Of a stretch of DNA of 64,000 nucleotides, positions 17,924-25,100 are shown in pieces. A model generated the notes under the pieces. That model worked only from the letters and a program-made list of their open reading frames with translations. It made no database searches and had not been told where the DNA came from. The translations under genes and the position numbers were made by a program. The DNA is from Mantamonas sphyraenae STR306. Its lineage: Eukaryota > Protista > CRuMs. Position 1 is the stretch's first letter; every line of letters begins with the position of its first letter. The DNA lies in assembly GCA_026936335.1 (NCBI GenBank), contig JAPMXV010000053.1, positions 1 to 64,000 of the forward strand. Reading direction: 5' to 3'.

Positions 17924-20900
17924 ATGGACACCTCCCAACCAGATTGGCTCCAGGGCTTCCTTTCCCCAACCGCCACCAAGCGCATGAGCACTCGCTCCAC
18001 ACGCTCCACAGGCCTGGCCGAAATGAAACTGCGTTTCAAACGCGCCACCTCGTCCTCCTCCGCCGCCGCCTCCTCCTATGCCCTTCCCAACACCGACGAC
18101 GACGACGCAGACGACGACGACGACGATCATCTTACTCCTCGCACTCAAGCATTTCGCCAACACATCCAACGGCACATCCCACTGGCCTCGGAGCGCTTTG
18201 CCGGCCGCCTCCTCGCCTCCACCTCCACAACCACCACCTCCACGTCCTCCTCCACTTCTCCCACCTCCTCCTCCACCACCTCCCCTTCGTCAACCCCCTC
18301 CTCACCTCCTCCCTCCTCCCCGTCCTCCTCACGAGCTCCATCCCCACAACCTGCAACCACCACCACCACCTCCTCCTCCTCCTCCTCCACCACCACCGCC
18401 TCGCCTCCCTCCTCCCCGCCCTCTCCGTCCGACGACACCCCAAGATCCGTCAAAGCCCTCCTCCAGTCCTCTGAACAGCTCAACGTCCTCGCTGCTCTCG
18501 ACGAACGCGCCATCCACAAACTCCACGCCCACTTTGGCCCAAACCCAAACGCCTCCCCACGCGACAACGAATCACACTCCCTCGTGGACACACACACACA
18601 CACACTCGACCTCCTCCACTTTACATCCGCCGTCCTAGCCTCTATGGGCCTCTCTCGCACAGACCTCTCCGAAGACCACATCCCCACCATCCAACGTATC
18701 ATCACCCTCTTTCAACGTGTCGACATCATGGACACCGGCGTCATCTCCTGGTCCGATCTCCTCGACTTTATCACCACCACGCCCCAGGACACCGATCCCT
18801 CCGCACGCCAGGGCCTCACCTTTGTACGCACCCTATCCCCACCCATCCCCACCCATCCCCACCCCACTGACCCACCCTCCTCCCACTGACCCACAGTACC
18901 AATCCACCCCCTTTGTCGCCGAACTCGACACTCCCTTCTCCCAACTCTTCGCCTTGCCCACCTTTGCACACCTCGTCGCCTACGCCAACGGCTCCCTCTA
19001 TCTGTGCGACACAAACACAGGCGCCGTCCGCTTCCAAACAAAACTCCACGTCGCCCAGCTCATGGGTGTCGCTCATGTCCCTCGTGCTCACCATATCTAC
19101 GCATCCACTCCCGACAGTCGCATCCTCGCCTTTGACACACATCGCCACTCTGTTTCATTCATCCGTGCCCCAGACGTCCAACTCTGCCTCCTCTACCACC
19201 CTGCGCACGACCTCCTACTCTCCGGTGACAACAGGGGCCAGCTCGTAGCATGGAGCATCGCCAAGCGCGGCACACTCACAAAACGCGCCTCCAGCATGCA
19301 GTTTGACAAGTTCCACACAGACTGGCTCACCGTTCTCGCTCCATTTGACGACAACCACGTCCTCTCGGGCTCCCTCGACCACACCGTTCGCCTCTGGAAT
19401 ATCGAAGCACGCACCTGCCTTTTCACCTACACCGGCCACACAAAGCCCGTCACCTGCATCACCCGCCTCGACTACGACCCCATTGCACTTGCCTCCGCCT
19501 CCAAAGACCGATCCGTTCTCCTCTGGGAGTCCTCCAAAGCCCGTCCCGCCGCAGCCCTCAGAGGCCACGAAACCCAGATCCTCGGCCTCCACCCGGCTCC
19601 CACCTCGTTCCAGCTCCTCTCCTACGACGCCTACGGTGAACTCCGCCTCTGGGACCTCCGCAACAACTCATGCGTCCAGCACATTACCCTCACCCACGAA
19701 TCCAACGACGCTGTCCTCTCTCTCGCCTACAGCCGCGCAAACGCACAGCTCATGGCCAGTGGCTCCACAACATGGTTTCGCCTTCGTGCCCTCACTCCCG
19801 ACGACAACGCTCTCGCCTCTCTCAACTCCATCTCCCACGCCCTCGCATGCAATACCCACACTTCCCTCATTCTCACTGCAGGCCGCGATCTCTCCCTCTG
19901 GTCCCTCCTCGACGGCGCCGTCCTCAAGAGCGTCCCCAGGCTATGCCCGTCCGACATCACTGCCGCCGCACTCGACCACCCCAACGCACGCCTCCTATTT
20001 CTCGGTGACGTCGACGGCACCATCCACCTCTACGACAGCTGCGACGCCACCCCGCTCGGCTTTGCCTCCTGCTTCAACGATCCCCTCACACACATCCACT
20101 TCCAGTCTTCAGACGCCCTCGTCGTCGCCTCCGACTACGGCAGCGTGGCCGTCCTCTCACTCTCTCTCGCCCAAACCAGCTCCAAGTCCATTGACATTCT
20201 CCAGTCCCGCTCCTTCACCTCCAAATGCTCCTCCACCCCACTCTCCACGTACTCCCCCTCTCAGAGACTGCTCCTCCTCGTCGGCGAATCCAGCGAATCC
20301 CAAAACACATCCCCAGCTTCCACCATCGAGCTCTGGCAGATCGACTACGGCTCCCTCCTTCAAAGCATCCAACTCGACGTTCGTGTGCTCAACGCCTGCT
20401 TCTGCGACTCCATCCACGCGCTTGCTATCGCCACAAACTCGGGCTACCTCGACTTTTACGCCATCACCACCCTCCACCTCTTTGCACGCATCCAAATGAC
20501 AGAGTCCCACTCTATCGACGCCATGCACTTTATGCCCACCCACAGGCTTCTCGTCACCGTCCACGACGAGTCTCGAGTCTGCGTCTGGCACCTCGACCGC
20601 ATCATCCAAGACTTTCGCCAACACCACCCGTCCCTTTGTGCCTCCTCCCCTCCCAATGCCTTTCCACCCCTCGGCCAACCTCTCCATGAGTCCTCCTCAG
20701 CATCGTCCTCGTCATCCTCAGACATCGACGACACCGCCTCCGTCGCCTCCTATTCCTCCACCCCGCTCCCAAACATCGACATCTCGCCACGCATCCACAT
20801 GAACAACGCAAAGTTCTTCCAACGATGCGCCTTCGAACCGCTCAACTCCTCCCACATCAGCTGTCTCGCTGTCGTCGATCAGCCCCTCCCTGCCATCCTC

Positions 20901-22478
20901 GTCGGCGGCTACAACGGCAACGCCTCCCTCCACAGCCCCGACGATGGACACATCTACGGCCAGCTCAGCACCGTCACCTCTGTCGATTGGACTTTCCCCA
21001 TCACCGACCAGCTCGCCTCTGCTAGCCAGTGCGAGCACGCTCGACAACTCCTTGACCAGCTCCACCAGCTTGACGACGACGACGACGATCTGCACAGCCA
21101 ATCCAACCACTCCTTGCTTCCTTCCACACCCGTGATCGACCCACACCTCCAGCAAGAGGCTCTCCTGGTTGGACTCAGCCCCTTCTACAGCTATCTCCAG
21201 CGCAACAACATCGCCAAAGCCGACGAGCGCCCATTTTTCCTCCCCAAGCACAAAGACGATGCCGCGACAAAGACCATTGCCTCGTCCACACGCCGCACAG
21301 ACTCTCTCCTTGCAGAGTACCACGCGCGACGTGGCGACGGTCCACTCACAGCTCCTGCAAAACCCGTCGCCGCCTTGTCCACCCTCCTCGACGACAACGC
21401 AAACGCAACCCTCAGCACCCTCAAGGCCGTCAGCAAGTGGAAACCACGCCGCAAGAAGCAGATCAAGTTCACCTCCCGCGAAGTCCTCGACTACCACCTT
21501 GGCGTCCAAGGCAAACAGCCACTCCGCGAACAGCCCAAGCCGACCAAGCGTGAACTCGAGGTCCAACACCTTGTGCGCATGACTCCTTCCACCAGACGCA
21601 CCCTCACGCCCCTGTCCCCCGAGGAGGCCAGTGTCCGCGCGCGCGCACGCATGAAGAAAGTGGCACGACTCAACCTCGGCGTACGATCCACAGACAGCAC
21701 CGCTGCAGGCGCCACATTGTCTGCCTCCAGCCCACTTGCACGCCCCAAGGCTACTGCGGTCAAGCTCGAACGCAAAAAGAAGGCTTCCATCGACGACGCC
21801 CAGCGCAAGGTCCTTGATCGCAGGCAGCAGCGCGTTGAAAGCCCAGTCCTCATTCCCGCCGACCTCGAACCCGGCGCCCAGGCCTCTGCAGAAGCCATGG
21901 CACTACGCCTGCGCCGTCTCAACATCCTCGACGACGATCTCGAGCTCGATGCGGTCCGCCGTGGCAAGCGTGTCCAAGCTGACGGCGCCTCGGCCGCCGA
22001 CCTCGCTTTGCGCACTCCGAATGCCCAACCCTCAGCCGCTACGACTCCGGCCCTGTCTGAAGACGCCTTGCGCGTTGACATGCCCTGGAGTCCCGGCGTC
22101 GTTCTCTTTCACCAGAAGACGCCGCAATCGGACGATGCCTTGCGCCTCCGCCGCCGCTTGTTCGCCACAACGTCAACCCACGCCGTCTCGACCACCGCTT
22201 CACGAGATCCGTTGGTGAAAAACACAGCCCAGCGCAAGCGCGACGCTCAACAGGCCCAGAACAAAGCCGACGCAGCACGAAAGGAAAAAGCTCGCAAGCG
22301 CCGCGCACGACAGCTCACACGCATGCGCGAAGAACGCAAGCTGCGTGAAGAAGAGACCCAACAGCAAGAGCTCGAAGCTGCTCGCAACCTGCAAACGACA
22401 AAAGAAATCGAATCCCTGCGCAAACGACTCGAGTTTTTGCGCCAGCTCAATAAGTGGGACTCCAAACATGCAGATTGA
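17924..22478 (+). CDS. EF-hand plus WD40-repeat protein (WDR49/WDR64/EFCAB8-like) with a basic coiled-coil tail; join(17924..18823,18897..22478)
   Basis: EF-hand LFQRVDIMDTGVISWSDLLDF, and WD repeats (SGSLDHTVRLWNI, GHTKPV, GELRLWDL). Intron GTACGC..CACAG. Confidence 0.75.
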
Positions 22479-22484
22479 ATTATT

Positions 22485-23789
22485 TCAGATCGCACGGAAC
22501 GCCATTGGATCCTTTTCGGGCTTGCGGCACATGCCCCTGCGATACAACACGATGCCCACGGCAGCACCGACCACAGCCAGACACGAAATCACAACCGCCG
22601 CGACCACGCCTGGGTTTGTCGGCTCGGCCGAAAACACAGCAAGCCACACTGATCCCGTGTCGACCTGAACTGTCATGTTCTGTGCAGGGGTGCCCACTCC
22701 AACCACGGTGAAAAACTGCATCGAATCGCTTGTCACTTGCTGCTTGCTTTCCGATGCCTCCAGCCGCCGACCCTGCGTTTCCTGCCTTAATGCTGCCACA
22801 ACGTCCGATGCCACGCGTATGCGTGGCTCCAGCGCCATCCCTCGGTGCGTGTCTGCTGCCTCCTGCACATCCCGGGAATGAAGCGTCACCCGCCCCGCTT
22901 TCGCCGCCGGCGTGAATCCAGACTTTTGTTTCGCAAAGCCCAGCCGGGGCGGGCTCTTTGTCACGTCGTGCACAACCACGTTGCCAAGGAAAAAGGGCAC
23001 ACCCATCGAACAGTAGCTCGGGTCGTCGCTCACAGTCGTGACGCACACCTTGTTGTCCTTGTCCACATAGCTGTCCCACGGCACCTCCACCTCCACCCCA
23101 GAGCCCAAATCAAACGTGAGAGTAGGCTTGGAAGCCTGCAGCGTCCGAAAGTCCGCCTGGAAGCGTTGGTGCTGCACACTCGGCAGGATCAGACACGACG
23201 CCCCGCTGTCCACGTGGCACTTCATCGCGCTTGAGCTCGTCGTCTTGGCGCCCATCTTGAAGCTACCCACCGTCACGTAGTACTTCGTGAACGTTCCTGC
23301 TTCGTCTTTCACCACGTCCACAAACTGCGGCTCCGCCGCAACGCTCTCCGCCTCCCACCCTCCCAGCTGGAGCTCTCCCTTTTCGCTCTGCAGCGCCAGC
23401 GCAAAAATGTTGCGTTTCAGCAAGTTGCCCGTGTGGCTCGTGTTTGTGAGCGAGTACATCAACGGGAACGGCGTCAAGCTGTCGCTGACATTCCGCAGGC
23501 CAAAACCAACAATCCCGTCGTGCCGCCACGTGCCCTTGCTCTCTCGTGCTCCCCCGAACCCTCCCATGCTATTGTATTCGCCCAGAGCCAGTCTCTCCCG
23601 TGCCACGTAGCCTGTCAGCTGTGACGTGTCTGCGTACGACACCGCAAAGTTTTGGTTCTTTGCTGTGAACGAGCTCGAGGCTGCTGGATCAAATGGCTTG
23701 CCCTCCACCAGCGTAACCAGCGCCGCCGCCGCCACCACCACACACACAACCACCGCCCTTACAGCCGCTCCTGGCCCTTTTGCACTCAT
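22485..23789 (-). CDS. Pepsin-family (A1) aspartic protease, circularly permuted, with a signal peptide and C-terminal TM anchor
   Basis: One uninterrupted ORF in this order: signal peptide, FDPAASSSF, flap SYAD, DGIVGFG, GELQLGG, VDSGAS, MGVPFF, RLGFA, then FFTVVGVGTPAQNMTVQVDTGS, then a TM helix. Confidence 0.9.
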   Translation of the reverse strand: MSAKGPGAAVRAVVVCVVVAAAALVTLVEGKPFDPAASSSFTAKNQNFAVSYADTSQLTGYVARERLALGEYNSMGGFGGARESKGTWRHDGIVGFGLRNVSDSLTPFPLMYSLTNTSHTGNLLKRNIFALALQSEKGELQLGGWEAESVAAEPQFVDVVKDEAGTFTKYYVTVGSFKMGAKTTSSSAMKCHVDSGASCLILPSVQHQRFQADFRTLQASKPTLTFDLGSGVEVEVPWDSYVDKDNKVCVTTVSDDPSYCSMGVPFFLGNVVVHDVTKSPPRLGFAKQKSGFTPAAKAGRVTLHSRDVQEAADTHRGMALEPRIRVASDVVAALRQETQGRRLEASESKQQVTSDSMQFFTVVGVGTPAQNMTVQVDTGSVWLAVFSAEPTNPGVVAAVVISCLAVVGAAVGIVLYRRGMCRKPEKDPMAFRAI

Positions 23790-24113
23790 TCGCAACGTCT
23801 GGCGTGTTGGTTCCCTCCTCGCACCTCCTTTTCTTCCCACTCTCCTTGCCCACATGCTCTTTCATCCCATCATCCTCTCCTCTTCCTCGCTTCCCACCAA
23901 ACTGCCCACACAACGCCACCTCGACACATGCGCGACTTGACCCAACCGGATTACCTTTACGGAACAACCTTTTGTATCACACTTGTGTCTGACCTGTGCG
24001 GCTTACCTACACGTGCAATCGATCACACACAAACAACATACCAAAGGAACAACAACGCGACACACGTCCACACGTCCATTCAACGACACGAAGAAACACA
24101 ACGCACAAAAACG

Positions 24114-25100
24114 ATGGATCTCGATTTTGACGCCTTTCTCCTGGACGACCTCGTCACCACTGATCTGACCGACTCCCTCGACGCCCTCATGCCTCTCCAC
24201 GCCCAACTGGACCTGGAAGCAGACTGGACGCACGAAGCGGACACGGACAGGTGCGTTGCAACTTGCCCACCCGCAAACTCGGAACACGCGCCCCGCCTTC
24301 CCGCTTCCCGCACATGCAGCCCTCGCCTTCTCACGCCGCCTTGTCTGTTCGCCTCGCCTCCACGCAGCCTCGACGACGAGTCTGTGTACTCTGACGACAC
24401 CGAGCGTGTCGAACACAACGACGGCGACGGCATGGACCTCGACGACACCCAGGAATTCGTCCTCGGTGAAGCACCCCTTGTCGACGCCGTCATGTCCAAG
24501 GCTTCCAACGAAGCTTTGGAAGAGCTGCTGCGCCGCAACGCAGACGTGCTCCAGCACGACGACGCGCCTCTGCGTGTCGTGCGTGCCTGCCACGCTGGCC
24601 GTTCGTTTGCCAGCATCGAAAAGCCGCGTCTCGGTGCAGTCACTCTGGTGACGTCTCCCGACGCCTCGGCCCTCTTTACCAAAGCTTCCACTGGCCCAGG
24701 ACGCCTTGGTCATGGCTGGCGCAGCGATGGGGCCCAGCGCAAGCTCAAGGACAGCACCCTTCGCCACAAGTACTTTGTCAACACCGATGCAGACCTGCAG
24801 CACCAGAGCCTCCACGTCTGGTGGCTCACAGACATGCACGACCGCTTCCTCATGCACATGCTGCCCAAAGACCAGCGTGTGTCCAAGCGCAAGTTTGACG
24901 CCAAGGACGACCAGCCCGCCCTCACCATTGACCCTGAGGGTTGGTTCGTCTCCAATCCCGACTTTGACCTCGACGTCGGCTTCCTGGACGTCCTGTCAGA
25001 TCCCCTGCCCATCGACAACGATGCGTTTGACTCCTGCAGCTCGTCCGGAGCGAAGACCCACACGCCCCTTGTCGCTTCACCCAAACGCCGACGTCTCTGA
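24114..25100 (+). CDS. Putative transcription factor with a CG-1/CAMTA-like DNA-binding domain; probably join(24114..24250,24368..25100)
   Basis: Acidic and hydrophobic termini, a core of KPRLGAVTLV..LGHGWRSDG..KYF..HVWWL..FLMHM, and a C-terminal NLS (SPKRRRL). Candidate 117-nt in-frame intron GTGCGT..CGCAG. Confidence 0.5.
   Translation: MDLDFDAFLLDDLVTTDLTDSLDALMPLHAQLDLEADWTHEADTDRCVATCPPANSEHAPRLPASRTCSPRLLTPPCLFASPPRSLDDESVYSDDTERVEHNDGDGMDLDDTQEFVLGEAPLVDAVMSKASNEALEELLRRNADVLQHDDAPLRVVRACHAGRSFASIEKPRLGAVTLVTSPDASALFTKASTGPGRLGHGWRSDGAQRKLKDSTLRHKYFVNTDADLQHQSLHVWWLTDMHDRFLMHMLPKDQRVSKRKFDAKDDQPALTIDPEGWFVSNPDFDLDVGFLDVLSDPLPIDNDAFDSCSSSGAKTHTPLVASPKRRRL

Follow-up and report, generated by a model that had tools for sequence, protein, structure and literature searches.

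Introduction

Pepsin and its zymogen pepsinogen, cathepsin D and renin (MEROPS A1A; PF00026) are the closest described relatives of the Mantamonas sphyraenae protease reported here. They share with it the fold, both D-[TS]-G motifs, the psi-loop Gly, the flap Tyr, a signal peptide and a prosegment-type strand. The D-[TS]-G motifs and the psi-loop glycines, which lie in a hydrophobic-hydrophobic-Gly motif in each lobe, form the catalytic core of the fold (PMC11313796). The pepsinogen prosegment is part of a six-stranded sheet (PMC4077824), and in plasmepsin X the mature strand has been proposed to replace the prosegment strand upon activation (10.1101/2021.09.24.460453). BACE1, BACE2 and plasmepsin V-like enzymes share type I topology, a C-terminal TM helix and a small residue at position 39 with the proteins described below, but they keep the canonical order, and their anchor follows the C-lobe rather than the Asp32 strand. 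Cathepsin D and cardosin A demonstrate that the fold works as two chains, with Asp32 borne on the light chain of cathepsin D. Both are, however, synthesized in canonical order before cleavage within a surface loop or an insert, and their Asp32 chain is unanchored.

A rearranged pepsinogen has reportedly been engineered by Lin, Koelsch, Loy and Tang (in Protein Sci, 1995). This artificial protein, ‘sin-pro-pep’, is said to carry an internal prosegment and to self-activate to two chains; its cut reportedly lies between the lobes, not at the 45-50 loop, and it has no anchor. In the papers found, circular permutation came up for aspartic proteases in one case only: swaposin, the plant-specific insert of phytepsin-type proteases (PMC3320104; PMC13552848). 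What is permuted there is the inserted saposin domain rather than the protease. No description of a natural permuted pepsin was found in a literature search covering few subscription journals, and the main text of the CIRPIN survey makes no reference to pepsin. Few enzyme folds have been studied as well as that of pepsin, and the family presented here adds about 240 natural permutants with one cut point. It is a real and conserved topological variant of A1, apparently undescribed so far. Databases label its members plain A1 or hypothetical proteins, so that domain-level annotation hides the re-ordering.

Chain order and locus

The window, the whole 64,000-nt stretch of M. sphyraenae DNA that was analysed, encodes on its minus strand a protease whose chain runs from a signal peptide through pepsin ~50-326 (with Asp215), a 57-aa linker and pepsin 1-42 (with Asp32) to a TM helix and a short tail. 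The body comprises the second half of the N-lobe and the entire C-lobe. The moved piece is 42 residues holding one of the two catalytic Asp, now beside the membrane anchor. The features are as follows.

22485..23789 (-), whole CDS, 434 aa plus stop, intronless; single ORF, no internal stop
23700..23789 (-), predicted signal peptide, aa 1-30; hydrophobic core and V-E-G before the cut, from hydropathy and sequence alone
22926..23699 (-), body, aa 31-288, equal to pepsin ~50-326; opens with KPFDP from 23699; Pfam 43-314 and structural alignment to pepsin 53-326
23634..23636 (-), flap Tyr52, equal to pepsin Tyr75; alignment to proteinase A
23505..23513 (-), N-lobe hydrophobic-hydrophobic-Gly motif I93-V94-G95, within DGIVG; psi-loop partner of the moved Asp32
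23202..23210 (-), catalytic motif D194-S-G (pepsin Asp215); Ala next, where most members carry Thr218
23193..23195 (-), Cys199, first of a family-specific Cys pair, candidate new disulfide; family alignment
23043..23045 (-), Cys249, second of the family-specific Cys pair; family alignment
23001..23009 (-), C-lobe psi-loop Gly motif S261-M262-G263
22932..22946 (-), RLGFA, the strand closing canonical pepsins; sequence and family profile
22755..22925 (-), internal linker, aa 289-345, probable former prosegment by motif enrichment in family linkers; mostly low pLDDT
22809..22823 (-), RIRVA, candidate prosegment first strand; DSSP of the model gives a strand (pLDDT about 67), then a helix (<50)
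22761..22769 (-), RRL, candidate processing site, 3 residues ahead of mature pepsin residue 1
22626..22754 (-), moved segment, aa 346-388, equal to pepsin 1-42; Pfam 1-32, family profile and three modelled strands
22653..22661 (-), catalytic motif D377-T-G (pepsin Asp32); Ala384 in place of Trp39
22542..22610 (-), TM helix, aa 394-416, 17 residues past Asp32; hydropathy 2.74, helix in model
22488..22541 (-), basic cytosolic tail, aa 417-434; 6 K/R in 18 residues

The Pfam Asp profile (PF00026) matched the protein with 91.5 bits (curated cut-off 19.9) in two stretches: profile positions 43-314 on aa 31-287 (whole-protein E 9e-26), followed by positions 1-32 on aa ~358-389 (E 1.8e-4, region scanned alone). 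Sequence matches in the PDB show the identical swap. The N-terminal part of a profile built from the family corresponds to human pepsin 49-324 (E 2e-35), and its C-terminal part to human pepsin 1-42 (E 2.6e-8). The two pieces tile the pepsin fold with the Cys45-Cys50 loop as the sole omission, and the canonical order of prosegment, Asp32 lobe and Asp215 lobe is reversed. These results support a circular permutation that involves the entire enzyme and places its termini at the lost loop, and we file the protease as a permuted variant of A1, not as an ordinary member. Compared with pepsin, the family has the prosegment and residues 1-42 placed behind residue 326, lacks Trp39 and the Cys45-Cys50 loop, has a different Cys pair in the C-lobe, and bears a TM anchor after residue 42.

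The original prediction had proposed this permutation from an intronless ORF with both catalytic motifs intact, with new termini where the Cys45-Cys50 loop is missing and a TM helix and short tail after the DTG. All of this held: the Pfam, PDB and family-profile matches and the collinear homologues agree on the order, the body starts at pepsin ~50 and the moved piece ends at 42, and every motif it had located (KPFDP, DSG, RLGFA, DTG and others) was verified in place. It had also anticipated the two PF00026 matches in swapped order.

Only about 320 bases separate the protease ATG from a divergent neighbour gene (window 24107-25100, +), which was very deeply covered in sequencing run X3. This neighbour contains an in-frame 117-nt GT..AG intron at about 24247-24365, read through by the ORF caller, and its second half resembles by eye a CG-1-type DNA-binding domain; a Pfam scan of the gene gave no match. 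On the other side, the stop of a WD40 gene (window 18717-22478, +) lies 6 bases from the protease stop. A single X3 contig spans both, and the 3' ends of the two genes probably overlap.

Homologous proteins and distribution

The original prediction treated the gene as a single case and suggested looking for the same motif order in other protists. Such a search instead placed the gene in a large family. An exhaustive HMMER search of 1.84 billion representatives returned 63 permuted proteins among the best 150 matches, and a second search with one permuted homologue added 107 proteins, 106 of them permuted and none canonical. Altogether about 240 permuted relatives were found besides two further Mantamonas copies, forming 63 clusters at 50% identity. 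A word-indexed protein search with the window protein gave no match, and the ESM Atlas returned generic aspartyl-protease clusters only.

The named sources include Guillardia, Hanusia, Rhodomonas, Teleaulax, Hemiselmis and Baffinella, all of which are cryptophytes and some of which have several copies. The others are Andalucia godoyi, Ancoracysta twista and Cochliopodium minus, a jakobid, a member of Provora and an amoebozoan, respectively. The remaining matches are mostly environmental contigs without an organism name, and transcriptome matches may include prey. No permuted match was named as animal, fungus or plant, most matches carrying no name. Prokaryotic and viral contigs searched with one homologue, a query that reaches close relatives, yielded none. 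An apparent archaeal member from an Asgard MAG (P0201 / L026, L027; MGB1592005.1) was rejected as probable eukaryotic contamination, since it falls in a 90% cluster with a Teleaulax protein and adjoins YABBY/HMG-box and ion-channel genes. Five other permuted sequences (P0134, P0141, P0150, P0031 and P0087) seem to lack the full Asp32 motif and may be wrong gene models or inactive copies.

The M. sphyraenae genome, a Falcon assembly from PacBio and Illumina reads (PMC10492846), was searched for paralogs over its 25,061,354 bases in 78 contigs. Two divergent permuted paralogs, about 30% identical to the window protein, both carry the two Asp motifs. The first (G000:C35:357104-358258, -; L002) is a single ORF with 34% identity. 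The second (G000:C57:~74365-76750, -; L024) contains introns, and its motifs were located frame by frame; it has a long acidic linker, and His replaces the flap Tyr. Canonical A1 genes are also present in this genome. One (G000:C20:209500-210666, -; L004) is cathepsin D-like with a Cys-rich saposin-type insert in the C-lobe, here in a non-plant genome. Another (G000:C16:38107-38781, -; L007) is TM-anchored; in the tree its partner is a Plasmodiophora protein, and its position is close to the permuted family.

An RNA-like contig from run X3 covers 21500-23720 and crosses the permutation junction with zero differences and zero gaps. The run is listed as ‘DNA?’; its RNA-like traits are a GT..AG joint in the next gene and a lack of cover between the two divergent genes. 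Could the order be an artefact of assembly or gene model, either a scrambled locus or a tandem gene pair read as one? All sequencing runs come from the study that produced the genome and are hence not independent of the assembly, which is the one point in favour of an artefact. Against it stand the ungapped X3 contig, the three paralogs on three contigs, and about 240 collinear homologues from unrelated samples, some of them genome assemblies (e.g., Guillardia JH992973.1). The homologues already refute an artefact, the chance of which is negligible, and misassembly, a doubt raised with the original prediction, is excluded. An upstream exon containing a DTG, a second such doubt, is unlikely in view of the gap to the divergent gene and of the homologues: no complete permuted homologue has an Asp32 segment upstream of the body. 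Nor was a relic of that segment found in the long N-terminal extensions of cryptophyte members.

Predicted structure and catalytic residues

AlphaFold2 models of the window protein (pLDDT 86.7, pTM 0.83) and of the homologue P0011 (pLDDT 87.4, pTM 0.86) were obtained. The body of the window model adopts the bilobed pepsin fold, with aa 30-289 superposing on pepsin 53-326 (Z 23, rmsd about 2.2 over 246 residues). The best fold match is a tie between BACE1 and other pepsins; the structural searches used sequential aligners, and these alignments cover the body only. The moved segment forms three strands with pLDDT 89-97. We estimate that pTM would be near 0.65 were the body alone rigid. A short segment of such high pLDDT, together with a pTM above the body-only estimate, suggests that the segment is packed against the body, and we infer from the model that it is docked with Asp377 and Asp194 paired in one active site. 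Covariation between moved segment and body was noisy at an effective depth of 91; the pair V94-V385 is plausible and was not counted as evidence.

The two models differ at the linker. In P0011 the mature strand is formed and the linker is intact and disordered, and in the window model a linker strand at aa 323-327 (pLDDT about 67) appears instead of the mature strand. The models look like two states, one with the mature strand and one with the linker strand in place.

Both catalytic motifs are intact in 230/233 permuted sequences, a count that leaves out P0055, a tandem double pepsin misfiled as permuted. The psi-loop Gly is present in 99% of members in the N-lobe and 96% in the C-lobe, and the flap residue is Tyr in 81% and Phe in 16% (97% together). 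Position 39 is Ala or Gly in 83% of members, Trp39 being lost family-wide. The conservation of both catalytic motifs supports strong selection on them, and the retention of the catalytic residues at 25-35% overall identity indicates that family members are probably active enzymes.

The window copy deviates from the family at several points. Thr218 is replaced by Ala, its mature strand is degenerate and its branch in the tree is long. Its N-lobe motif I-V-G95 is complete, and its C-lobe motif S-M-G263 retains the Gly but begins with Ser, a non-hydrophobic residue. Ala218 is found in active renin, which works nearer neutral pH, and Ala39 in active BACE1. It is improbable that this copy, though permuted in fold, has little or no catalytic activity and acts instead as a binding protein attached to the membrane. 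The family-wide loss of Trp39 would fit such a copy, as would Ala218, the degenerate strand and the long branch, but the renin and BACE1 cases weaken the two substitutions as arguments, and both Asp, both psi-loop Gly and the flap Tyr are all retained. Where members of the pepsin fold are known to be inactive, it is the C-lobe Asp that they have lost (PMC11313796).

Linker and activation

The original prediction described the stretch between body and moved segment as prosegment-like. Family linkers range from 27 to 256 aa (median 55, against 49 aa for canonical prosegment regions) and show little sequence conservation. The pattern of the prosegment first strand occurs in 28/60 family linkers (4.5 expected), compared with 18/41 canonical prosegments (3.7 expected), and the pattern of the mature N-terminal strand stands immediately ahead of the moved segment in 36/60 (4.6 expected); these strand patterns were selected after data inspection. 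A motif trained solely on canonical prosegments, though muddy, scored the linkers above all 300 shuffles, an enrichment weaker than that of the patterns but independent of them. A1_Propeptide was not among the 25 families that a Pfam scan listed. The tripeptide RRL occurs in 9/60 linkers (15%; 1.4 expected), and in the window protein and several others it lies just ahead of mature residue 1. Furin-type and general dibasic sites showed no enrichment in family linkers. Taken together, the linker sequences support derivation of the family linker from a prosegment. The description fits the family better than the window copy, which misses the strict prosegment strand pattern and whose mature strand is degenerate. 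RVTLHSR and RIRVA in the window linker are only candidates for the prosegment strand.

The reading that we favour, with a probability of roughly 0.6, is that the window protein is an active membrane-anchored A1 protease of the secretory pathway or cell surface, one of a group of natural circular permutants of single origin, in which a cut in the internal prosegment yields two chains. After removal of the signal peptide, the C-terminal segment would insert its strands into the N-lobe, and Asp377 and Asp194 would form an ordinary two-Asp site. The linker would act as the old prosegment, its first strand occupying the place in the sheet that is later taken by the mature N-terminal strand. As this is the arrangement of pepsin-type zymogens, the uncut protein is probably a zymogen too. 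Cleavage of the linker, either autocatalytic at low pH or by another protease at RRL-like sites, would permit the strand swap and leave a non-covalent two-chain enzyme whose short chain bears Asp32 and the anchor. Of 47 representatives, 40 have a TM helix after the segment, and for half of them its distance from Asp32 is at most 20 residues. The anchor would exit the N-lobe a few residues past the Asp32 strand and hold the cleft near the membrane, which suggests membrane-near substrates. The family bears on how an anchor at the Asp32 strand alters substrate choice near the membrane.

The permuted protease might instead work as a single chain, the linker being a relic that bridges the old termini and can remain uncut. 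We regard this as unlikely but as a serious competitor: linker length is highly variable and its sequence poorly conserved, no convertase site is conserved, and the P0011 model has its mature strand placed with the linker uncut and disordered. On the other hand, the prosegment-strand pattern is as frequent in the linkers as in canonical zymogens, a pattern that a mere spacer would not need, and in several members RRL sites are concentrated immediately ahead of mature residue 1. On the sequences and models at hand, two-chain activation appears more likely than a single-chain enzyme, by about two to one. With this family one can ask by experiment whether a prosegment is able to act as chaperone and inhibitor from within the chain, and whether it must be excised or merely displaced.

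Phylogeny and origin

A quick tree was built from 42 permuted rows, put back in canonical order, and 60 canonical rows; one canonical row (L007) consists of two reading-frame pieces joined by X. It places 41 permuted rows on one side (SH-aLRT 90) and leaves the long branch of Cochliopodium without a firm position. A tree in which all 42 permuted rows are held together lies 40 log-likelihood units above the free search (p-AU 0.95). Deep forks are poorly supported, and a single origin of the permuted family fits the tree best, short of a proven clade. The same cut point, an LQLG motif, Ala/Gly at position 39 and the Cys199-Cys249 pair are common to the family and agree with one origin. Both Cys are present in 236/240 sequences and were lost jointly in P0002 and P0113; judged by this pattern, the pair is probably a new disulfide.

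The family is probably old. That CRuMs, cryptophytes, a jakobid and an amoebozoan all have members implies that the family either arose very early and was lost many times or was transferred between protists, and its spread over these groups and Provora bears on the protease set of early eukaryotes. It is possible, though we lean against it, that a permuted, tethered family dates from or near the last eukaryotic common ancestor, was lost in animals, fungi and plants and expanded in cryptophytes, with activation giving two chains and one Asp on an anchored chain of ~90 residues. If so, protease activity would be tied to the membrane by construction.

The original prediction attributed the permutation to tandem duplication and trimming. 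A signal-[pro-A-B]x2-TM gene that lost its first pro-A and its second B would have exactly the observed order. Fission and re-fusion would give the same order, and tandem duplication is the simplest route. The proposal is favoured by linkers that keep the prosegment strand motif and the mature N-terminal strand; against it, no duplication intermediate was found among the permuted and canonical matches. Two tandem double pepsins with four DTG motifs (P0055 and P0145) were considered as intermediates and rejected, as they group with canonical enzymes. The two halves of P0055 are identical, and it may be an assembly duplicate. Among the canonical rows, which were picked by likeness to the query and include no labelled BACE or plasmepsin V rows, those nearest the family carry a small residue at position 39, and in several of them the chain ends in a TM helix.
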